From Utricularia gibba (lineage: Eukaryota; Plantae; Magnoliophyta): a stretch of 64,000 nucleotides of DNA. Below the pieces are notes generated by a model, which saw only the letters and a program-made list of their open reading frames with translations, ran no database searches and was not told where the DNA came from. Shown here piece after piece: positions 4,078-25,800 of this stretch (position 1 is the first letter of the stretch; every line of letters starts with the position of its first letter). The stretch lies in assembly GCA_002189035.1 (NCBI GenBank), contig NEEC01000017.1, positions 1,178,001-1,242,000 on the forward strand, written 5' to 3'. Both the position numbers and the translations under genes were made by a program.

Positions 4078-5487
4078 ATGGGTGTTGAGGAAAACGGCAG
4101 CGGGGGGAGGAAAACGCCGTCGGAAAGGACTAGGAGGCGGCGGGAAAGAGTTTCCGCAGTACAGATACTTTATGAAACTTGCAAAGAGGTTTTTGCAGAT
4201 TGCGGTCCTCATGTTGTTCCTTCACCTGAAAATGTTCAAAAACTTGCATCTGTTTTGGGTATTCATTCTCAAATCTCAATCTCCCTTTGCTTATATGACT
4301 CGCTCACAAGCTTTTATTGGGTTTAGTTGTCGTTTTCATGCTTCTTTGAGGGTTTTTATGGGATCAGCTATTTGATCTGTGAACCCTTTGAACTGCTCGT
4401 GATTCTGGATGCTCGAAGCCGTTAAAGATGAAAGCTTTAGTTTGATCTTCTCTGATTTGTTAGGCTGAATCCTATAGTTGAATTCGAAGAAAATGTTTAA
4501 ATGGATATTTTGATTTCCCAAGACTCTAACTTTATGAGATGGGTTCCACATCCATCCACTTCCCATTACTCTAGGAAGAGCCTTCATGCATGCAAAACTG
4601 CCTGTGTCCATGTATTTATTTTGTCTTCAGATCTGCAATTTCTAAACAAAACATTGACCGATTTTGAAATGAATCGATATTGTCTCAGATGGAGTGACTC
4701 AAGAAGACGTTGGTTTACGGCCAAATATGCCGTTTTTCAGCAGCGCGAGATCGCCAGTGATCACTTATATGCACATAGCCGAATGTGACAAATTCTCAGT
4801 ACGTAGCCTGAAAAGCTTGAACTTCTGAATGTGAACTTAAATGACTGATTAGTACTTGTTGGATCACGGCAGATTGGGATCTTCTGCTTGCCACCAAACA
4901 GCGTAATCCCGCTTCATGATCATCCTGGAATGACAGTTTTCAGCAAGCTCCTATTCGGAACAATGCATGTCAAAGCTTATGACTGGGCTGAAGGGTTGCA
5001 TTCAGGAGTCACTGTTCCAAAGGGTATGTTTACCTTGCACGCCTTGATCTGATTCTTCAGCGTGCTTGATGTCGATCCTCGATGCAGGGGGGTTGAAGCT
5101 AGCGAAGCTCAAGATGGACACAAACCTTAGCTCCCCGTGCGCACCCTCCATCCTGTATCCGAATGATGGTGGAAATATGCACCATTTCACAGCCAAAACA
5201 GCCTGCGCGTTGCTCGACGTCCTTGGCCCTCCGTACTCCGACGACGATGGTCGCCATTGCCAGTACTTCTACGAGATCCCGTATGAGGCACATCCAGCAG
5301 GTATACTCCATGATGAAGAAGAAGCTCGATTGCTCAACACAGATTTCGCCTCAATTTTCCCCATTTTGCAGGACTTCATGACGACAAAGAGGAATATGCA
5401 TGGCTCGGTGAAAAGGAGAAACCGGAGGAACTTTCCGTCGTCGGAGTTGCGTATACAGGTCCCCGAATATCCACAAAAAGAAAATGA
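4078..5487 (+). CDS. PCO: Plant cysteine oxidase, PCO1/2-type (5 exons)
   Basis: Exons ~4078-4255, 4689-4798, 4873-5023, 5088-5300, 5372-5487, all GT-AG. Motifs [50 protein letters not shown] and EYAWL; basic Arg-rich N-terminus. Confidence 0.93.
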
Positions 5488-6379
5488 CGAAGAAGGCAGA
5501 TACTGATTCCCCTTCACACTCCCAAGAAAACGATGTTTGCTCTGTCCCCGCGATATGTTTGGTTTCTCTCAGACTGTTTCCTCCCTCCCTTGGCCAAGAA
5601 GACGATGTGGATGTACATACATGCAGCGCACACGGTGAATACAGACTGCATTCTCGCCCACTGAAATGGTGAATCAGAAAGCTCCAACTCCTCCTCAGTG
5701 CAGCCAATCTCAATATGCCACGTGGTGCTGCCACGTCCCCCTCCGCTTTTTACATTGATTAAGATGTTTGGCAACCTAAGATTAGAGCCACGTTTACGGT
5801 TTTTGTGGGGGCTGTGGGGCCCCCATTCTATTTCAGCAAATAATATCTCACGGGAAAAAAGCCGTTTTTTAATAGTATGTATTCAAATAAATAGGAGAAG
5901 AAGCGGCAAAGGTTTCTATTTACGTACAAAGCCTCAAAAAACCCATTTCCTAAACATAGAAACAAAAATTCAAAAGCTCTCGGACCCACTGGTCGTTCTT
6001 CCTCTACTTCCCGGCATGATTGGGCCTAGGCCCACTATCAGGAAGCCTCAGGCCCGGCCCAACAGGAAGGACCACTCCATAGTCCATAGCCCATCCCCTC
6101 TACTGCGAATGCGATGCGGTGGCGTCAAGGCATTGCAACACTTAGGTGGATGCTTAGAATGTTGCCACCCTTGCGGTTAATTTATTTCATCTTCTGACTT
6201 CTCACAAAAAGCAGATAAATAAAGGATGTTGGCCCACACTGTAGATAAATTATGTCTAGTTTTTAAATAATGAAAAATGAATAATATACAATTTGGGACT
6301 TATTGTTTATAATTAAAATAAATTTACATCAGATTCATTCATTAACCAACAAATGATTTGATGGGTTTACTTTTCATTA

Positions 6380-7370: not shown

Positions 7371-8744
7371 AGAAGAAAGAGCAGAACAACATATCTTATA
7401 CTTTTAAATTCATAAATAAATGTATCCTATGTTGTATTTTTTAATCTGATAAGCAAAAGGAAACTTTATGGGATCTGACTTAACAAAAAAAATGAGAGTT
7501 ATAGGGCGTGGGAGCATGTAATAAAGAGGTCGTATTAAATTATGTGACACCCACATCATTAATCTAACCCCAAATACCTTAATTAACCTGTCCAGTTGAT
7601 TAATTAACTCACTACCATCTTCAAACTCTCCTACACTACTCATTGAAATACGCTCCCTAACCGCATAGCATAGCTTTTGGACTTTTAGGCACACCCCCAT
7701 ATCCTACACCAAAAAAAAAAAAAAAAAAACAAGTCCCAAATAAATTTATTTCAATGAGAAAACTAAAAGGAAAAAATTAAATAAGGAATCTATTAGGTTA
7801 TGTTTGGCATGTTGATTTAATTGTTTGAATATAAATGTGTTGATAATAATTTATGTTTTATAAACTAGTTTAACAATACAAAACAGTTGTAAAACACTTC
7901 AGTTGGAAATTTTAAAACTCAACTTTGTTAGATAAGTAAATATTATTTAATTTAAATATATCTATTAAATATAATATATTTTAAATACATATATGTAAAA
8001 ACTATATACCAAATAAAATTCAATTTTAATCACATAGTAATTTAAATATACTATTAAATAAATTATACTATCAAACACTTCCGTAAACTTTATTTTGAAA
8101 AAAAAAATTGTTATAATTCTAGTACTGAACATTAGTAATTTTTTAAAAAATTCAAAATAACTCAAAATAATTGTGGAAGTTTTGTAGGTTCCAAGTACAA
8201 TCTTATACTTTATGAATAGAGTTACTTATAATCAAAGACTTAGTAAATGGGCAGGCATTGATGAGGCGCGGACCCCAAAGATGAACTCGAAGACCTAATC
8301 TTGTGCCTGGACAAGAAAATAAATGGACAAAGATTGTGTTTTGTCCAAACCTTGTAAGCCTACTTCACAGCTGATTCGATACGCTTTTTGGAGATGAAAC
8401 AAAAACGTACGGTTTTGGAAGTTGTGGCGGATCGATCGCCTGCGGTGTGGTTGGAGACGCGGGGCGCCTGCATTGGTGGAGTAGGCCTTTCGTGTTTCGT
8501 TAGCTTGTATGGTTTAAGTGATTTTATGTGGAAGAAGCAGAAGAAGAAGAAGGAGAGAGTTTGGGAAATCAGCTTATATAAGCCATAAGCTCCAAGGGAA
8601 CACAGACGGGAAAAGACATAGGTTTTGGATAGAAGTTAAAGGAAAGAGCCAAGGTCAAAGAACTTCTTCCTTCGTGGCTCTTCCACTGCCTCATTCATCT
8701 CAATGGCAGTGTGTTATCCAGTTGTCTTCGGCTCTCCGGATGAT

Positions 8745-11700
8745 CTACACCGTGTAGTTTTGCTGGATGGTCTCGATGTCGAGCCCCTTGAGCTTCACGA
8801 CGGACTCGACATGGCCCTTGAGTGTGTGCAGCTCACGAAGTCTGCAACCACCACAGTGTGTTTTCACAAGAAGAGATTTTATGGGTTGTCTAAAAGTAAG
8901 GATTTTGGTGTATTTGGTACCTTGCGATCTCAGCTCTTCTCTTTGCTTGCTCCGCGATTTCGGAGAGCTCTCTGTAGCTATTCTTCTCGTTCAGTATGTT
9001 AGCAGGCTCTGCTGTTTGTAGGCCGTGTAAGGTTCTCTGAGCGAGTGCCCATTGAGCTTCTCTGTCTTCTTTGCCGTAGTCTTTCTTGGTTGTGAATGCA
9101 GTCTGTTGGAAAGACATGGAAATGCTTGGAATCCATCAAATGTGATAAGATATGATGCACCTCTAGCAGCAGTAGTAGAGTACCTTATTCTCATAGAAGT
9201 TGGTCCAAGCCTTTCCACTGAGGATGTATCTGATGGCAAACTTGATGAAATCCAGTGGCACGTAGAAGACGACACTGTAAATCCATATAACGCCGGCCCA
9301 TCCCCATCCACATCCCCTGATTCTTGCGAATCCCCAGTGTGCATATACAGCGATGAATGTGGCAACCTAACAATACACAGAGTTAGCTGTTTTGCTGGTT
9401 TCATGGTTTGGAGTATGGCCGGAGACTTACAAGTTGGGCGATGATGAAGGCGGACATCAGAAGCATGCCGGGTCGTTCTACGTACGACCAGCTCCGGGAC
9501 CTTGTAACGAAGATGAGAGCTTGGCTGACAATGCTCACTTGCAAGTACAGAGCAGCCATCATTTGTGTTTCATCATGTCTGATGTCTCTGACTCCGAATC
9601 TCGACTGTTTCAGGCAAGGTTTGAGCAAACTCAGGGATTTGAAATGAAAGAAGAAGGACTGTGTTGGGTTGTTCTCTTACAGGAAAGAAGTCGGTTTTGT
9701 GCATCAACCAAAAGAATATGACAGTCATGAGAGCAAGGTAGCCTCCAAGAATGACGCCTGTAGCGAAGATTTCTTTCAGCTTCCAGCTATCTGGGAGGGG
9801 GGATGGCTTCACTCTATCCTTTGAAATGGTCATGATGGTACCTGAAACCCCACAGCTTCAAGATCATCACCAATACAGAAGCATCCACAGAGAAACAGAT
9901 ACGAGTCGTTACCGTCGTTGAGTATGGCGATGATCAAAACCATGAAAGGTGAAAAGTCGAACTTCCATATCAGAGCAATGAGCATGAAGCCAAACTGCAA
10001 AGATGAAGTGAGTCAAAAGAGTGGAATGGGAGGGTCTGGTTCAGGTTTATGGAGTAGATTCCATTATGATCAACTTACAACAATACGGATAGTGATGGAG
10101 ACGGCGTAGATCTGCAAAAGAAGATTTCACTCCTTACATGATCATGAAAAGAAAAGGAGAAGGAATGTGTTGAACGAACGACACTCACTGTGTAGTTCTT
10201 CATCCTTTGGAAAATGGCTCGGCTTGTCAAGACAGCACTGATGATAACGCTGAGACCGGGTTCTGTAAGCACTATATCCGAAGCACTTCTTGCAGCATCT
10301 GTGGCATCAGCAACAGCAATGCCGATATCAGCCTTCTTTAGTGCAGGAGCATCGTTGACACCATCTCCTGTCATTCCCACAATGTGTTTGCTCTCCTGTA
10401 ACTTCTTCACGATTTCATACTTGTGTTCTGCAAAGGACAGCATATGAAGTATGAGAATATATGCTTGATGATTGTCACTTTATGAATAAACGAAGAAGCA
10501 AGTGACCTGGAAACACCCCAGCAAAACCATCTGCCTTCTCAATGAGCTCCTCAACAGGAACCCCAGCTATGGATTCATCCTTGTGTTGCCCGAGCAACGA
10601 TGCTGAAGGATACATGTTTGCTCCCATTCCGAGCCTTCTCCCTGTTTCTTTGGCAATGGCGAGTTGATCACCTACACAAGCGTGTGTCAGTTTGATGGGA
10701 TGTCTCATCTTATTCTCGAAGCTTTTATATTACCTGTGATCATCTTAACATTAACACCAAGATTGAGAGCTCTTCGAATTGTCTCGGCACTGTCGTGTCT
10801 GGGGGGATCAAACAGTGACAGAAGACCAACAAATTGCCATGGAGCACCAGCAGATTCCTTGCTTTTCTCTGGAACTTCCTGTAAAAACATGAAGCATTTG
10901 ATGATCATCAAGCAAATGGAGGAAACAAATGGTATTGCTGTAACGATTTCACACTTGTCTGGACACCGCCAACGATCGAAGACCACGCTCTGCAAACTTA
11001 TCAATGACAGCATGAACCTTCTTCTTGAAGTCCTCTTTGCAGTTGCAGAGGGTGAGGATCTAATTCCAAAAAGATAATCCATAAGATAAATGTAGATAAA
11101 TGTAAAGCAATCCCCATGATGTACCTGCTCAGGGGCGCCTTTGCTTGCTCGATGCCATTTTCCATCAGAATCAACATATGTGAGTGCTGTACGCTTGTCG
11201 ACAGGGTTGAATGGGAAGAAGTGCACTTCCCTTATGCCAGCTCTTGCCTAAGAAACAATGAAAAACTTACTGTGAGAAAAAGAAACATAAGGAGGGGAGA
11301 AAGATGAAGAAGAAGCAAACCTCTTTGGGATCAGCAAGAGTTCCAACAATGGCAGCATCTATGGCATCTTGATTTTCGGTTCTCGATGCTCTGGCAGCCA
11401 AAAGAAGAACATGGTCAGGATCCACTCCCTTTGCGAAAACTTCTATCAAACCCTTGTCGACTGTGAGCTTGTTAAGAGTCAGAGTTCCTGTTTTGTCACT
11501 ACACAAAACGTCCATTCCAGCCATTTCTTCAATAGCAGTCATTCTCTTAGTGATTGCACCTTGGGTTGAAAGCTTGTGGGAGCCAATGGCCATTGTAACA
11601 GACAACACCGTTGGCATGGCGATCGGAATACCACCGATCAGGAGCACCAGGAGGTTATCAATACCTTGTCTATACGGCCTGTGTTGAATCGGGTACATCA

Positions 11701-13282
11701 CTATGATCTCAGTCAGCATTCCCACTGCAATGGAGCAAATACAGAAGTTTCCAATGGCTGTGAGGACTTTCTGGAAGTGACCAACTTGGTGAGTGCTGTC
11801 AACAAGATGAGCTGCCTTCCCAAAGAAGGTGTGCACTCCAGTAGCTATGACAATCGCTTCGATTTCACCCTGTTTACACGTCGATCCGGAGTATATTTCG
11901 TCTCCAGGATTCTTTGTCACAGGAAGGGATTCTCCAGTCAGTGCAGATTGATCAATCTTCAAAGGATCACCTTCCAGAAGACGAGCATCGGCAGGGATGA
12001 TGTCTCCAAGTTTGATGCTTATAATGTCTCCCGGAACCAAAATGGCTGCTTCCTGTTCACTCCATTTCCCGTCCCTAAGCACCTAAACTCCATAATCATC
12101 ACATTGTTATCATAAATCATCGAAAGTGGAGAGGAGAGTGTTCAGCTTGTGATGTTCAGAAACTTCACCTTTGTTTTGGGAGCAAGACCAGCCATAAGAG
12201 CAGCAGCAGCGTTTCCAGCATTGTTCTCTTCAATGAAACTGATGGTAGAGTTGATAACCAGTAAACACATAATACCCACAAAGTCTTGCCAATCCGGTGG
12301 CTTCCCTCCGCCGTTGGCCAAAGCAATCGCCATGATGGCGGCAGACTCCATGACCCAAGAGAGTGGGTTCCACATAAACCCCAGGAACTTGAGAATTTTG
12401 CTTTCCTGCATACACAGAAACATTAAACACCTGGTACTGAAAAAAGCCATGGTTAGCAAAGAAAAAGCAACCTTCTTCTCTTCCAACTTGTTGAGACCAA
12501 AAATCTCAGTTCGGTTGGTTGCCTCATCGCTTGATAACCCTTCTGGTGAACATTCCAGTAGCTGGAACACCTCCTCTATCGGGATCTTAACCTGTTTTTC
12601 AATAAACCCATGTTGATTATAGATCTTTGCAACAAACAACACTCTCGAATCACGTAAACCATGACACTAACTCCAACAAAAAAACAACAAATCCAGAATA
12701 TGTCCTTTGGTCCACGTGGCCTTGTGATGGCCAAAGTTGACTCAAGGTGGTCTCCACTTTGACTTATCTCCAACTCCCAATCTTACTATTTATTCAAAGG
12801 TACAGATTTCAAGGGGAAGCTTACCCACCTCTACAGATTAGGGAGGATAGCTTCTAGGGTTTCCATTATTACAAATCTAATAACCAATCCCCCACAACAA
12901 CCCATCACAAAACGATCAACTGAAACTTTGTATTACAGACACAACAGAAGACAATCAAATCTTCCTCTTGCATCACACACAGTTTTGTCCAAATCTTCCA
13001 TGAATAAAGAAAGAAGAAGAGACTGAACCATACAAACTGCCCTCAAAACAAGAAGTTGGTTTCTGAAGCATGCGCATCAGAACCCGCAGAAACTCTACCC
13101 CTCTGCGCAGTTCTACCCACAAAAGTAGACCCTGAAGCTCATGGTGCGAGCCCATGCAAGTAGTTGACTACTCTAAAGCAGGTGTTTCCAGACACAGAGA
13201 CTGGAGCATGAAACGAGAAGGGGGGAGAAGAGGGGTTTACCAGATCGACGGACTCATTCTTGATGTGCTCGAGGTTTCCCAT
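8745..13282 (-). CDS. AHA: Plasma-membrane H+-ATPase (P3A), AHA1/2/5-like subfamily, ~15 exons
   Basis: Start [14 protein letters not shown] (13282-13241). Motifs CSDKTGTLT and [13 protein letters not shown], autoinhibitory [16 protein letters not shown], and the C-terminal 14-3-3 site QQNYTV* (stop 8745-8747). TATAAAT on the minus strand at 13377-13383. Confidence 0.97.
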
Positions 13283-13721
13283 GGCGGGGGCTTCAGCAGC
13301 TTCGCAGGAGGGAGGGACGGCACGGCACGGAGTGAAGGAGTGAATGAATCCAAGAGAAGTGTGTCCTGCTGCTTTTATTTATATGCAGTGCCAGCAAGAC
13401 AGACGCCATTAATGGCTAAGCGTGATTACTTGACAATCCGATTGCTTGATTCGCCCATCTTGGAAGCATTAAGATCGGGATTGAATTTTCGTCATTTGTA
13501 TGTTTACCCCTTCAATCAAGTGGTGCAGGTTCCTCCATTTTTCCACAAAAGGAAAAAACATTGCTGCTCTTCAAATTGTGCGTCTCCAACCACAAACGTA
13601 CCATTACACAGGACACGGCGCTGACACTCCTCCACCACCCTTTGAACACATCACTTTAAATTAATTTTATTTTAGAAAATTCAATTTTGTTTAAAAAAAG
13701 TCTGCATAGTTATAATCTATG

Positions 13722-18455: not shown

Positions 18456-19818
18456 CGAGGCAAGTGGTATGCCTTTTTTGTTGTGTATTTTAGTGATATT
18501 AATAAATAATTTAGTAATTAAGGGATATGTAATTTTAAATATTAAATAATACTTTAAAGTATTCATATGAATAATTTTAATATAATTATAACATATCTTG
18601 GATTTATTGTTGTAAGCATTTTTAATTTTAAATACATGAATATATAAATATCATTAAAATATTACATATAATTAATTAATTTGTAAATAAATTAATGAAA
18701 AGTTCAAAATTAGTTTCAATATTTTCAATTCAATCATAAATTTGTAAGATAACAGCATTTTAAAATTATTTATCCAACTCTATTACTGAAATAATAGCAA
18801 ATTATCAATTTTTTATGTTAATCTTGTTTGAAATTAATTATATAGTTAAACAGTTTTAGATTCCTTTTTTCAAGAAAAAGCACAACTTATGATATATAAA
18901 AAAGAAATTTTCTATTATAATATTTATCAGATTATTTATAGTTTATATTTAATTTTAGATATTACACCTAATTATATTTAAAATTATTTATATTATTCAT
19001 TTAAAGTATTTTTTAATAATTACGTTTTCATTTCGCTCCTAAATTACTAATGTATTCTTTATTATTGTCCAATTCCCAGGATCTGTGTATTGTTTACAAG
19101 TGGGCTATCTTTTGTTACAATTATTAGAACAAATAATACTGCATCATGTTTTTAAAATAAAATAATTAAATATATAAAAAATTGTATATTATTAATAATT
19201 AATTAAATTAAATCTTTTTAATATAATCTATATTTTTTGTGTAATTGGATTTCACGTGTATTTATATGACCATTAGATACCTAATTTCAACAACAAATTG
19301 ATACAAAACATTGATATAACTACTCAAAATGTAACACATAAACCGTATGCCCCTAAGATCTGTAAGCCGACATCATGACCAAACAATCGATCTTCATAGT
19401 AAGCACGTACGGATGCCTTTGTCTTAATGGGACCGTTGATATGTTTATGTTCCTACAGCCTAAACACAGCATCATAGCGGTATGAGCAACGTCAGCCCGA
19501 GAGTGGAATGCGTACTGATTTTTTGGTTGAAAATTGATCGTGGGTTCCGTACAATCATCGATGTAGTATCATTATCATTGAATCTGCATCTATCACTGCG
19601 AGACAGGTTCATGGGACGTACAAGAAACATACTGTCGATGTTAGAAAATCAGCCTTGGTTCGAATGCAACGCCCCATTTCTTGGACTGTAGAGTGTTGTT
19701 CCCTGCAAACACAGTGGCTCGGCGTTGCCGATCCAACAGCAGCATGTTTATCTATTGAGGCAGTCACAGAGCAACAACAGGCAGAGAAGGCGTTGAGCAG
19801 TAAACGCAGGAGGAGGAT

Positions 19819-19833
19819 GGCACGTGACGTGCC
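19819..19833. promoter_or_regulatory. Near-palindromic double ACGT element (G-box plus ABRE-like)
   Basis: GGCACGTGACGTGCC contains CACGTG and a second ACGTG and is an inverted repeat around one central base. It lies ~1.1 kb upstream of the IMA-like ORF. Confidence 0.4.
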
Positions 19834-20670
19834 CGTGTCTCCATCCTACTTTTGGGGATGTGGGAGACGGGCCACGTTGAGGTTGGCAGAGGAGGGCCAC
19901 ACCAGCAGCTGCCCGCTCCAACCCCATACAGGATGGGGTTGTGTGTTGTAAATGAGAAAAAATCAAAATCTAAGTCACTTAAAAAGCTTTTAAAGTATTT
20001 TTGGATTCCTAGAGATTCAAAGTTCTTTTCTATAACTGCTCTATTGATCTTAAAAATCAATAGAACATATACGTTTAACCTTAAACTCTAATGATCTCGA
20101 TACAAAACGAAGTAAAATGGATAAAACTTTGGTTCGTACATATGCGAGAGTCTTTTGAGTGGGTTTGACCTTTATGTGCGTAGTTTTGTTGAGTTTTGAG
20201 ATACTTCAATCCAACTCAATCTAATAAATTAGAATTCTATGCATATATGAACACAACTTACTATCAAACTCTCTTCAACTAGTAATGTGAGATAACAATT
20301 TTTTCTCTAATACAATAAATTCCAACATTGTGTTCTATGTGCCTGAGGGACTGTTCAATTCCTCGTATCATAGCATGGAAAGATGGACAAAGTGTGATAA
20401 GCTGAGAAGTTAGAATGCAGCCTGCAATTGGAAATCCTTCCAGGGTTGCCAAGTTCAAGTTTAGAAGTCAGAAGCCATGGAGATTATGCAGGCTACTCGA
20501 GTTCAATTGTTACTTAGTCTTCTCACACAGCCAGAGCTTAGAAAATCATAATGTTATCGCTGGTTTGGGACACAAGATAATGCAAGAGTGACCCAAAGGG
20601 TGTACTCGCCAGAGCAGCAAGACATAAAAAAAGTCTAAATCCTGCAAGGTGTAAAGTGAACAAAGAAACT

Positions 20671-20848
20671 CCACGTGGATTCTGCACTCAACCTCCTGCA
20701 TTCCACACGCACGGCACTCGCCTCCATGAGCAAAACTCATGCAGTAAAGGGATGGGAAACAACGCACATGAAAAATCCCATCAAATTCTTACAACTTTTG
20801 CTAAAAGCAAATCCTTCCCATTTTCCTTCTTCTGGAGCACCTATAAAT
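20671..20848 (+). promoter_or_regulatory. Proximal promoter of the IMA-like gene
   Basis: CCACGTGG G-box 20671-20678, CATGC (IDE1-core-like) 20738-20742, CACATG E-box 20765-20770 and TATAAAT 20842-20848, which starts 74 bp before the ATG. Confidence 0.65.
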
Positions 20849-20915
20849 TCCACTCCCTGGATACCCTGATCCCCGCATACAACTGAGCCCACGTTCCGTG
20901 ATTAACAACCGGCAA

Positions 20916-21056
20916 ATGTCGATTCCCGAAGTTGCAGTTGGACTCCGATTTGAAGTGGGGTCCGTGCTCATGGATCGCGGTGCATCTCGCCGAGGAAACG
21001 AGGGGGACGACGACGACGACGACGATGACGGACCAAGCGTGGCGCCGGCAGCCTAG
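20916..21056 (+). CDS. IMA: IRON MAN / FE-UPTAKE-INDUCING PEPTIDE (IMA/FEP)-like peptide, 46 aa
   Basis: Translates to MSIPEVAVGLRFEVGSVLMDRGASRRGNEGDDDDDDDDGPSVAPAA*. Matches the IMA C-terminal consensus G-D-D-D-D-(spacer)-x-x-A-P-A-A-stop and the typical ~50-aa size. ATG context is GCAAATG with an upstream TATA. Confidence 0.85.
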   Translation: MSIPEVAVGLRFEVGSVLMDRGASRRGNEGDDDDDDDDGPSVAPAA

Positions 21057-21959
21057 AGCTGTCTCCATCTTCTTGTTTTTTTTTTTCCCCTCTTCATGGG
21101 AGGAGTGCGTACTTATCTATATCTGTGTTGGTTTCGAGGTTGAGGAGTATTAGGGTTTCAGTCTCACCAAAGTGAGGCTTTGAATCCCAAGAATACTGAA
21201 AGGGGTTGGTGCTTATGTACTTCTAGGTTTTGAATCCTTTTACAGTCCCACTTCAGAACTTGGTTTCTTCTTCAACATTGTTCACAGTGAAGGAAGTAGC
21301 CACTGAAGCAGACAATATCCAATCCAAATCTCCATTGAATCTTCTCCATTTTAATATAAAACCTGTTCACGTTTGTGAATGGGGAAGGCCCCAGCTCCTT
21401 GGAGGATGCGAAAGTGAAACCCCATTGCAAATTGTTATGGGGATTTCTGTAACTATTTTATTGGCTTTTGTACTGTCTGATCACAGTCAATGATGATGCC
21501 ACAGATTCTAATACCTTTTTTTTTCTGCTTAAAAAATAATATTTTACTCATTTTTCTTCACCCATTACGTGAAAACATGTCAGAAAATTTCTATGTAATT
21601 CCTAAACCCTAAAAACACAAAATCTGGTTTGGACCCGTCAGGTGTTGGAGTCCAATTTGTGTAATTTATATGTTGAAAATACTGCTGTGTCTAACATATG
21701 AATATACTTGTGTCAGAATAGTAAAATTTGCAAGACACCGGTGTCTATGAGAATATTTGTAAAATACCTGTAGTTTATATATTTATAAAATATAGTTAAT
21801 ATTGCTTTGAAATAGATTTTGTTATAAAATTCAAAACAAATCAGCCAATGCTTCGAAATTCATTTCATTTGAAGGTTTCATATATAGCGAGTAGTTAACA
21901 ACATACTACCAATTGCAAAGAATTTGAATAAACAACATGTGACAGATTTACGTATATTT

Positions 21960-22300
21960 GAAGAATGTAAAAGATGTGAGAAATAAGTTCATCATGCTTT
22001 GATTAAATACAATGAGGTAGACAATTTTTGGAATCATGTAAAAGTATGGTGTTATAGCATACTTAACCCACATTGGAACAAGATAATATATGGATATGGT
22101 TATTCTTTTCTGTACAATTCACACCCACAACAATTAAAGGAGCTATGAAAATTGTGTCATATGTTGCACTTTGGATTATATGGAATGGAAGAAATACCAA
22201 ACGTTTCAAACATATTGAATGGTTATTATCGAAGTTATTGGAGAATCAACAATTTATGAGTTAACAATATGATATTAAATCACCTCAACTTCATATGTTT
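21960..22300 (+). mobile_element. Degenerate LINE (L1) ORF2 3' fragment
   Basis: ORF 22073-22264 contains ALWIIWNGRNTKRF, the W-x-I-W-x-x-R-N-x-x-x-F motif typical of the C-terminal region of plant L1 ORF2. Confidence 0.55.
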
Positions 22301-22862
22301 GTAATAGATGGGTTTAATTTTTTTATAAGAAAATGATTTTTTTTATTTTTTTTCTATGAGGAAAAAAAAGAAATATATTGCATCATTCCAAAACAGGTAG
22401 TATAAATATGATAATGTGCGATTATATTGTACTTCACAAATTATAACAAGCACCGGGTTATTGTACATGTGTTAGGCAGTGTTACTGCATTTTTTAAATT
22501 ATGATAAACATTAGTTAGAATACATGCAATATTTATATTTTAAATATTCAATTCGGGTCAATTCATGATACGGGTCAAGTTCAGATATCTAATTCGTTGG
22601 CTCATGATTTAACCAATTATGTGTTTTATCTTAACTAATCTAGCACAAATCCTTATTTTAATATATTATTATTACATTTTAGTTCAAATGGCGAAAAAAA
22701 AAAGGGAAATGATGATAACGGCAAATGCACAACGGTCATATAATTTGAAACTAGAAGCCAAATTTCAAAAGGGGAAGCGCTCGAAGAGAGCATAAAAGTG
22801 GCGGATTTCTTCGGTTTAAGACAGGAACAGCGAAATTCTCGTAGACCCAGTAGCCAACTACC

Positions 22863-25800
22863 ATGGAAGACGGAGAATCTGAGAAGAATCTTGGAACCCA
22901 TGGTGCTTCTTCAGTCGTGGGTGAAGATGAAAATTTCGATTCTTTAGCTGATTCAATGATTTGCGATTCGGATTCGAAACTTGTGTCGAGGGGATTTTCG
23001 CTTCCTAATTTTCCAGGTTTGATTTTTCTGTTTTATGAGTAGTGTGGATTGTGGGTAGTGCATTCCACAGATCCCATGAATTTTTGTGACTTCGTTGTTT
23101 TTCGCTACAACAGAGGACATTGTGCTTTTTATCAACGCCGGTGCCTCCATCTCTACGGAATTAGCATCCGGTGTAAAGTTTTTGGCTGACGAATTCTTCG
23201 AAGGTGGGAACACCTTTCAAACAGAGGAATTCATCACAGGGGGCGGGGACTGTTTTTTCATTTATCAGTCAGCGAGATTGGGGAATTTCTTCTATCGCAT
23301 CCAGAATCTTCCACCGGGGACTATGTTGTTGATCTGCACTTTTTAGAAATGATCAATATTCTTGGACCTAAAGGGATGAGAGTGTTTAATGTCTATATGC
23401 AGCAGGAAAAGGCATGTCACCTTCTCAGATATTTTGTGTTACGAAAGTGTTGTCAGATATCTGCACTTCTTATTTAAGGGATTTTCTATCAACTGCAGGT
23501 TTTGGATCATTTTGACATCTACTCTGTAGTTGGGTCTAACAAACCCTTACAATTGGTTGGTTCCCGAGTGTTAGTCAAGGATGATGGAGTTCTTATCTTG
23601 CAATTTGAGGGAGTACTTGGCAGCCCACTAGTGAGTGCTATTTGCATTAGGAGAGCACCTAGGATGTCAGGTATTTCATTTTACATATTGTATGAGTGCT
23701 TGTGAATGTTTATAGAACTTCAGCTCACAATATTCATTGGTTACAGGCTCTCATCAAAACCGTGGCTATGTTGTTTGTAAGAACTGCTCAGCTGAGATTG
23801 AATACCCTTTAACACAGGTACGGAATGAAATCAATACTGAGCCACGTATTAGGCTGGTTAAGCTGCAATAATTGAATGTTTTACTTTGTTGATATAGATG
23901 AATGATCATAGAATGAAATCAGTTGCCAAGTACGAGAAAACTGTTCAAGATTTGAAGGATACACTGAAAAAAAGACTGATGAATGCTATCAATCATGGAT
24001 GTCATGGACTTCTGCTAATGAGGAACTTGAGAAGACAAGAACGGAGCTCTTCAACAAGACATTCCATGCAAATTCTCTAGGTGCCATTTTCTTGTAGTTA
24101 CTAACCTCATTTACTTTAACTGAACATGGAGGTATCTTGTTTATCCTAAATTTGAAAATTTTGTTTGCCACATTTCTGGTATACTGGCTTAAATCTAGCA
24201 GCATAAGCGAGTTAGAAGAAGACTACTTATCTTTCAATCTCTAGTCATCATAGGGCTTCGATAACATCCTGAACACTATTATATAACATCATCGCACAAA
24301 TTTTCATGATGATAACACAGTTTTTATTTTTCTTTATTTTTTTTTTATCTTGAACAAACTATCATTTAGCATGTCCACTTTTCTTCCTGCAGAACAATCT
24401 CTAGAGAAGCAATCCGAAAGGCTTAAGGATGTCTCTGCCAAGTATGATCATGACAAAAGGACTTGGACCATGGCAATCGATGGTTTAGAACAAAAAGTTA
24501 AGGTGATTCCCCAATTTCTAGTTTGATACATCAGATAGCCCTTTTATTTTGAGAATCCTATGCATTAATATTTGATGAAATAGGTGATGAAGCGACAACA
24601 CTCACAGCTTTCTCAAGATGCACATGATTGTATAGACACTATTCCTGATCTGAGTAAAATGGTTTTTGCGGTTCACACACTTGGTAAGTATACACTGACA
24701 GTTGCTATTATTAATGGTGGTAGTTGTTAATGTCGATTGTGGTCAATATGTAGTTGAACAGTGCGATCATCTCAAAATGAAGTGCCATGAAGAGCAAATG
24801 AAGAGAAGAAGGCTTCATAATGAATTGCAGGAAGCTAAAGGTTAGATACTAAAATCTTACTGTAGGTTATTATTCTCTTCTTCGTTCTGAGCATGGTCTT
24901 GAATTTCAGGAAATATCAGGGTGTTTTGTCGTTGCCGTCCTCTTAGCAAAGCAGAAATAGAATCTGGTTGTGTGTCAGTCGTAGATTTTGATGCTGCAAA
25001 GGATGGAGAGCTCGGAGTACCTGGAAACGGATCCTCTAAGAAGACTTTCAAATTTGATCGTGTTTACACACCAAGGATGATCAAGGTGTGTGCTGAAAGT
25101 GCTTCAATTGAAGATTTGTACAAAATTGTTTAGAAATTAACTGACAATCTGTTCCACTTTGTACAGTTGAAGTTTTTTCTGATGCTGCACCTATGATCGT
25201 GTCGGTTTTAGATGGATACAATGTCTGCATATTTGCTTACGGACAAACAGGAACAGGGAAGACTTTCACAATGGAGGGTACAAAAGAGAATAGGGGTGTG
25301 AACTATAGAACTTTGGAAGAATTATTCAATGTTGCTAGTGAAAGAGCTGAAACCTACAGTTACACCATTTCCGTTAGTGTGCTTGAAGTCTATAACGAAC
25401 AGATAAGAGATTTATTAGCTACAGAAACAAGCAAGAAGTAAGTTTTTATTTAACTTCAAAATTCTTGTGTTCTCTTCAAGTAGCTTCTTATGTGGTGCTA
25501 AAACCTCCAGGTTAGAGATAAAGCAAGCTCCTGAAGGATTCCATCATATTCCGGGAATTGTGGAAGCCAATGTTGAAAACATACAGCAAGTCTGGAATAT
25601 TCTTCAGCAAGGAAGTCGTGCTCGAGCTGTTGGATCAAACAATGTCAATGAGCATAGCAGTCGGTCTCACTGGTAAGTGGCTTTATTATGTAACATTCCC
25701 TGGTGCACCTGCGCAAGCTCTTATATTATCTCTACTCATTTGTGTTCCCTTGTTAGCATGCTCTGCATCATGGTTAGAGCCAAGAATCTCTTGAATGGTG

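Follow-up and report, generated by a model that had tools for sequence, protein, structure and literature searches.

A probable IRON MAN/FEP-type iron-signalling peptide gene, apparently missed by annotation, in an AT-rich interval of a plant genome

The short open reading frame (ORF) at positions 20916-21056 (+ strand, stop codon included) of the window, by which we mean the whole 64-kb stretch of DNA analysed here, is very probably an IMA/FEP gene, a transcribed gene for an iron-signalling peptide of known family. It was apparently missed by annotation and appears to be an ordinary member of its family, representing no new kind. A first-pass annotation of the same DNA had already read the ORF as an IMA/FEP gene, and this reading is now supported by a discrete mRNA, a match to a profile hidden Markov model (HMM) of relatives, a synonymous-biased pattern of sequence change, a promoter module shared with related genes and an angiosperm host.

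IMA/FEP peptides act as master positive regulators of iron uptake, are candidate handles for biofortification and are encoded by genes that gene callers routinely miss, these being tiny and conserved at the C-terminus only. The name IRON MAN/FE-UPTAKE-INDUCING PEPTIDE reportedly belongs to the work of Grillet et al. 2018 and Hirayama et al. 2018. Members are about 50 aa long and have in common a 17-residue C-terminal motif that is both necessary and sufficient for the activation of Fe uptake (10.1101/351635). All eight Arabidopsis IMA genes respond to Fe supply (10.1101/351635, PMC10167411). Traits by which the family is recognised further include strong induction under Fe deficiency and a rise in Fe/Mn on overexpression.

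The open reading frame and its peptide

The ORF opens with an ATG at 20916, closes with a TAG at 21054-21056 and encodes a product of 46 aa, close to the ~50 aa typical of IMA/FEP peptides; both the frame and its translation are exactly those given in the first-pass annotation. Translated from the + strand, the C-terminus of the product is GDDDDDDDDGPSVAPAA, and the tail can be summarised as G-D8-G-P-S-V-A-P-A-A-stop, with G30 followed by D31-D38. The C-terminal 17 residues (G30-A46, encoded at 21003-21053 on the + strand) form the presumed BTS/BTSL-interaction and metal-binding motif. Here the G-D-D-D-D element is present as an Asp stretch ahead of the terminal motif, which runs ...V-A-P-A-A with Ala as the last residue and is followed directly by TAG. 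The eight Asp residues had been ascribed to a (GAC)n repeat, and such a trinucleotide repeat does encode the tract (21006-21030, + strand, period 3, 8.3 copies).

The strict pattern published in 2018, G-D-D-D-D-x(1,3)-D-x-A-P-A-A, is not matched by the peptide, position -6 being Ser41 and not Asp. The last 17 residues of AtIMA1 are ENGGDDDDSGYDYAPAA (10.1101/351635), so the earlier comparison, in which PSV takes the place of YDY of AtIMA1 and the consensus Asp is replaced, is correct. We kept the family assignment despite Ser at -6 because the pattern is a consensus of 132 sequences (10.1101/351635) and no tested requirement, because the residues found to be important in experiments (the terminal Ala, the PAA tail and the Asp stretch) are present, and because other species have peptides of the same gene and promoter architecture in which -6 is Ser or Lys.

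Across all six frames of the whole 64 kb, APAA followed by a stop and a run of at least five Asp each occur solely in this ORF, which is thus single-copy within the window, as had been proposed. The GC content of the coding sequence is 62%, versus 41% for the 3'UTR. A Pfam scan of the peptide returned no family, and neither the exact 46-aa product nor the 52-aa product of a GTG start occurs among ~15 billion proteins, which is consistent with the apparently unannotated status of the gene.

The 46-aa peptide contains no Lys (a count of 0), so BTS could not ubiquitinate it on Lys. Judging from its composition, a Lys-free IMA of this kind could bind BTS-type ligases yet escape Lys ubiquitination; the question of Lys ubiquitination likewise stands for AtIMA3 (PMC9483112).

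Transcript structure and allelic variation

The gene is transcribed. The stretch is represented in nine public RNA runs, which come from three studies of this organism, and four of these were placed on positions 19200-23200. Their contigs (X1, 20843-21491; X2, 20873-21497; X5, 20877-21511; X9, part of the stretch) delimit an mRNA of ~635 nt at 20875-21511 on the + strand, comprising a 5'UTR (20875-20915), the coding sequence (20916-21056) and a 3'UTR (21057-21511). No splice joints were present in the contigs, and the gene is therefore intronless. Contig depth for the transcript in the RNA assemblies is substantial, while coverage drops to zero over 19200-20807 and 21612-23200 in each of the four; these silent flanks argue against carry-over of genomic DNA.

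Both ends of the transcript are defined by the X5 contig, where position 20875 is preceded by a non-genomic leader of 23 nt with GGG at its end, and position 21511 is followed by an A21 tail. The leader resembles a template-switch adapter and, together with the tail, fixes the strand (+) as well as the two ends, and the mRNA is discrete and polyadenylated and looks capped. The mapped 5' ends (20875-20877) lie 33-35 nt downstream of the first T of a TATA box, TATAAAT (20842-20848, + strand), which stands 74 nt before the ATG, where the first-pass annotation had located it.

The context of the start codon had been called good; with C at -3 and T at +4 it is only moderate, yet the ORF opens at the first AUG of the transcript, is its longest ATG-initiated ORF and is preceded by no upstream ORF in the mapped transcript. 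Folding of the transcript gave a z-score of -2.4, which is uninformative.

A divergent allele represented in X5 and X9 differs at eight positions and by two UTR indels, and keeps the ORF. One of the differences, T>C at 20985, results in S24P in the variable N-terminal part of the peptide, and the two indels are 3'UTR deletions of 5 nt and 1 nt (21083 and 21176). The X5 contig spans 635 reference bases but is only 626 letters long, and the deletions listed outside the masked repeat account for just six bases. From this contig arithmetic the GAC repeat of X5 is probably 3 nt shorter, in frame, giving seven Asp as against eight.

Relatives and conservation of the C-terminal motif

A word-indexed homologue search with the single peptide gave no candidates. 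One credible match was obtained by phmmer against 1.84 billion representatives (P0002, E 1.8e-5), namely KAG5596419.1 of Solanum commersonii, a 'hypothetical protein, partial' of 102 aa that contains two IMA-like units. Another phmmer match, P0001 (4,133 aa, 0 aligned stretches), was taken as a low-complexity Asp-rich artefact. With a three-sequence profile, four peptides of 45-49 aa (P0003-P0006) were recovered from public transcriptome assemblies, all of which end in D6-8-G-x-[KS]-V-A-P-A-A. A further candidate, P0007, ends in ...GPQMPL and is not an IMA.

Among these relatives, P0006 shares 17 of its last 18 residues with the window peptide and likewise has Ser at -6. At the genomic level, a Solanum commersonii locus (L009, CM031112.1:40577222-40592071) contains four tandem IMA-like ORFs of 46-49 aa inside 10 kb (1284-1424, 5986-6132, 8707-8850 and 10821-10970 of the locus), two of which are wrongly fused across 2.7 kb in the deposited model KAG5596419.1. 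In the Solanum relatives Lys-Lys stands directly ahead of VAPAA, while the window peptide is without Lys. A profile search with conservation in relatives had been named earlier as a check on the IMA reading; the APAA-stop tail is found in P0003-P0006 and in the four ORFs of L009. The first-pass annotation had also called the gene divergent. The replacement of Asp by Ser at -6 is real, but it is not peculiar to this gene, the relatives having Ser (P0006) or Lys (Solanum) at that position.

Eight independent IMA-like peptides, some from Solanum commersonii and the others from public transcriptomes, served to build an HMM without the query, which we compared with the 2,023 stop-to-stop ORFs of the window. 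The IMA ORF was the sole match (28.9 bits, E 9e-8; the next-best ORF had an E-value of 0.11), where the eight source peptides are themselves uncharacterised predictions tied to the experimentally studied IMAs by the motif alone. The model aligns with the last 21 residues, and its end coincides with the end of the ORF. By both the HMM and phmmer, statistically supported similarity is confined to the C-terminal motif, and the N-terminal half has no similarity to the relatives. Nearest clusters in the ESM Atlas are unnamed Streptophyta proteins of 49-54 aa with scores of 0.85-0.89, which we regard as a lead only. A literature search for KVAPAA or SVAPAA tails found no relevant paper.

At the nucleotide level, BLASTN of the locus against the loci of relatives aligned only a 58-nt stretch coding for the motif, to L001, the closest relative and itself a distant one, at 84% identity. 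Over the last 19 codons the two differ by eight synonymous changes and one non-synonymous change, and in L001 GAT and GAC codons are combined differently in the Asp tract. This synonymous bias and the different codon mix imply that the peptide sequence, and not a microsatellite, has been conserved, and the codon comparison indicates that purifying selection acts on the motif.

A candidate promoter module

A G-box, CACGTG, is located at 20672-20677, 244 nt before the ATG, where bHLH IVc/URI-type factors may bind. No other CACGTG occurs in the 1 kb ahead of the gene (the 64 kb has 13 in all), and the sequence flanking it, CACGTGGATTCTG, is similar to CACGTGTGGATTGTG in Solanum-type IMA promoters. 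In Arabidopsis, IMA1 and IMA2 are direct targets of URI/bHLH121 (PMC6911256), and bHLH105 and bHLH115 bind the IMA3 promoter (PMC9483112).

A second element, the palindrome CCATGAGC-N4-CTCATGC (20724-20742), lies 52 nt downstream of the G-box and 192 nt before the ATG. The exact palindrome has one match in the window, with 0.08 expected even when two mismatches are allowed, and the looser form CATGAG-N5-CTCATG had no match in 200 shuffles. L001 and L002-L005 also have the palindrome ahead of their IMA-like ORFs (at 22-40 in L001 and 491-509 in L003). L009 has exactly four palindromes in 14.85 kb, one ahead of each of its IMA-like ORFs (1050-1068, 5482-5498, 8198-8216 and 10500-10516). Only a degenerate palindrome was found in L007, and none in the 405 nt on hand for L006. 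We found no paper describing the palindrome.

Several copies also carry a G-box with the similar flank CACGTG(T)GGATT(G/C)TG, usually 20-50 nt ahead of the palindrome. The pairing of palindrome and G-box is common to the window gene and IMA-like genes from three other sources, and the G-box keeps its position relative to the TATA box, with 170 bp between them in the window and 168 bp in L002-L005. The remaining promoter sequence does not align among the IMA-like genes compared.

We tentatively suggest, with somewhat less than even confidence, that the G-box and palindrome constitute an undescribed IMA-specific cis-module, conserved across the Lamiales-like species of the window, Solanum and a third species, and that the peptides with Ser or Lys at -6 form an asterid subclass. 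If so, one or more factors conveying iron status to IMA transcription would dock at the module, possibly a partner of bHLH IVc/URI proteins or a CATGC binder of the B3 type. In that case the subclass of 'G-x-[KS]-VAPAA' peptides would have its own preference among the BTS/BTSL ligases. Its presence upstream of most of the IMA-like genes inspected makes the palindrome a concrete candidate route from iron status to IMA transcription.

Genomic setting and host

The IMA gene stands alone in an AT-rich interval of ~12 kb. No ORF of at least 120 aa occurs between 13624 and 25677, in agreement with the earlier description of an apparently empty gap. A search for repeats and terminal repeats around the gene revealed only AT-rich chance matches and no transposon structure, and an Rfam scan of 14-28 kb gave no match. 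A scan for bacterial-type promoters and terminators was also empty, which is irrelevant for a plant gene.

Neighbouring genes are typical of plants and include P-type ATPases, NPH3, SAGA-Tad1 and GRAS. Two separate P-type cation ATPase genes with E1-E2 ATPase domains flank the IMA gene, at 8991-13624 and at 56926-58902 (- strand), the second having a 658-aa exon with N-terminal, actuator and hydrolase domains. An intact intronless GRAS ORF at 59666-61090 (- strand) is a SHORT-ROOT orthologue, with best named matches (60-67% identity) in the Lamiales (Perilla, Handroanthus, Buddleja, Paulownia, Olea and Salvia); other asterids come next, and rosids after them. A top identity of 60-67% suggests that the species and its close relatives are absent among the named proteins searched. 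From these matches the host is a core eudicot, most likely a lamiid asterid. IMA genes are described as occurring in all angiosperms and were not found in gymnosperms, ferns or algae (10.1101/351635); because the SHORT-ROOT orthologue matches the Lamiales best, the host is an angiosperm within the range expected to carry them.

A GC-rich island at 19700-19950, in AT-rich surroundings, contains a distal palindromic double ACGT element, GGCACGTGACGTGCC (19819-19833), with two overlapping ACGT cores. The element is 1.1 kb upstream and its link to the gene is uncertain. RNA contigs did not cover it in any of the four runs, and the island with its element may be either remote regulatory DNA or a relic.

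Proposed mechanism and alternative explanations

The gene is predicted to be iron-regulated and translated, and its peptide to bind BTS and to have a physiological effect. By analogy with the Arabidopsis and rice IMAs, bHLH IVc/URI-type factors at the G-box would switch the gene on under Fe deficiency, and a further factor at the palindrome would perhaps join them in driving the ~635-nt mRNA. The peptide would then occupy BTS/BTSL, the E3 ligases that sense iron (HRZ in rice), by attaching its D8-GPSVAPAA tail to their C-terminal region. Deletion of the last seven residues abolishes IMA binding, and the last Ala is essential for binding to BTS/HRZ (10.1101/2022.03.11.483574, PMC9226616). The bHLH IVc factors have a similar C-terminal tail, PAA or PVA, and competition by IMAs shields them from BTS-mediated degradation (PMC9226616, PMC9483112, PMC8933713). 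The bound peptide may likewise compete for BTS/BTSL with bHLH IVc factors, whose PAA tail is similar, so that these would be shielded from degradation and the iron-uptake programme sustained.

Two of the eight Arabidopsis IMAs have been reported not to induce Fe uptake (PMC10167411, PMC9483112), and, as the main alternative, the present gene might likewise be an expressed IMA paralogue with lost or weakened canonical activity, comparable to AtIMA5 and AtIMA8. Ser at the off-consensus position -6, or the unusual N-terminus, might then impair BTS/BTSL binding, with other IMA copies in the genome carrying the function. We consider this rather unlikely, given that Ser or Lys at -6 has been retained across species while synonymous sites diverged, that the terminal Ala and the PAA motif, the needs mapped by experiment, are intact, and that the promoter module is conserved and the depth of the RNA-assembly contigs substantial.

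It is improbable that the peptide, instead of being a decoy of BTS-type ligases, is mainly metal-binding and buffers or shuttles Fe2+/Mn2+/Zn2+ in places such as the phloem. In Arabidopsis and rice, activity follows the C-terminal residues and the last Ala (10.1101/2022.03.11.483574, PMC9226616), and an Asp-poor artificial IMA made from a bHLH C-terminus still raised Fe (10.1101/2022.03.11.483574). A metal-buffering role would fit the Asp stretch of IMA1, which binds Fe2+, Cu, Zn and Mn in vitro (10.1101/351635), the extension of the tract to eight Asp in the window peptide, and the Asp-rich relatives from Citrus styles, which were described before any link to iron (PMC3305554), but the two roles can coexist.

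That the ORF is a product of chance from a GAC microsatellite in a non-coding RNA, or that the signal stems from a transposon fragment or DNA contamination, is most improbable. In favour of such a reading, the Asp tract is a trinucleotide repeat, the peptide lacks a Pfam match and the runs are labelled RNA or DNA by guess only. Against it, the HMM match is unique among the 2,023 ORFs, L001 encodes the tract with another GAT/GAC mix and mostly synonymous change, and the motif abuts the stop codon exactly as in the IMA family. The runs that cover the gene show no coverage of its flanks, a poly(A) tail is present on one contig, and the surroundings hold no repeats, terminal repeats or Rfam match.

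Significance

Recognising the IMA gene at 20916-21056 corrects the annotation of this genome. The peptide, whose transcript ends are defined, also varies naturally from the family in having Ser in place of the consensus Asp(-6) and in lacking Lys, and as such helps to map the residues that BTS-type ligases read. The motif variant itself is minor and shared with relatives, and the IMA family is already well known.

Comparison with known systems

Arabidopsis IMA1/FEP3 to IMA3/FEP1 and rice OsIMA1/2 resemble the window peptide in being ~50 aa long with a variable, unalignable N-terminus, and in the bipartite arrangement of Gly, an Asp stretch, a short spacer and A-P-A-A at the extreme C-terminus, with Ala last. 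A small intronless transcript, a G-box-bearing promoter and an angiosperm host are further points of agreement. In contrast to these peptides, the window peptide has Ser for the consensus Asp at -6 (G-P-S-V here versus G-Y-D-Y in AtIMA1), a longer Asp tract of eight residues and no Lys.

The peptides of Solanum commersonii and P0003-P0006 belong to the same length class and to the same subtype, E-[GN]-D6-8-G-x-[KS]-V-A-P-A-A-stop, and they share with the window gene the promoter order of G-box, CCATGAGC-N4-CTCATGC palindrome and TATA box. The N-terminal half of the window peptide, however, is unrelated to that of these relatives and is missing the Solanum block ...ISFCLNRE.... In Solanum the copies form a tandem cluster, in contrast to the single copy of the window.

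The Asp-rich proteins described in 2012 from stylar canal cells of Citrus clementina are short (44-94 aa), contain poly-Asp/Gly and end in ...APAA (PMC3305554). They are evidently of the same family, described before IMAs were named, and were tied to pollen-pistil interaction and stress, not to iron (PMC3305554). Unlike the window peptide, they carry the motif YDYAPAA, sometimes repeated within one protein (PMC3305554).

The bHLH IVc factors (bHLH105/ILR3, bHLH115 and OsPRI1) differ from the window peptide in being several hundred residues long, with a bHLH domain and no Asp tract. They share with it the form of the C-terminus, ending in PAA or PVA with a last Ala that is needed for BTS/HRZ binding, and it is this BTS-interaction tail that IMA peptides are thought to mimic.
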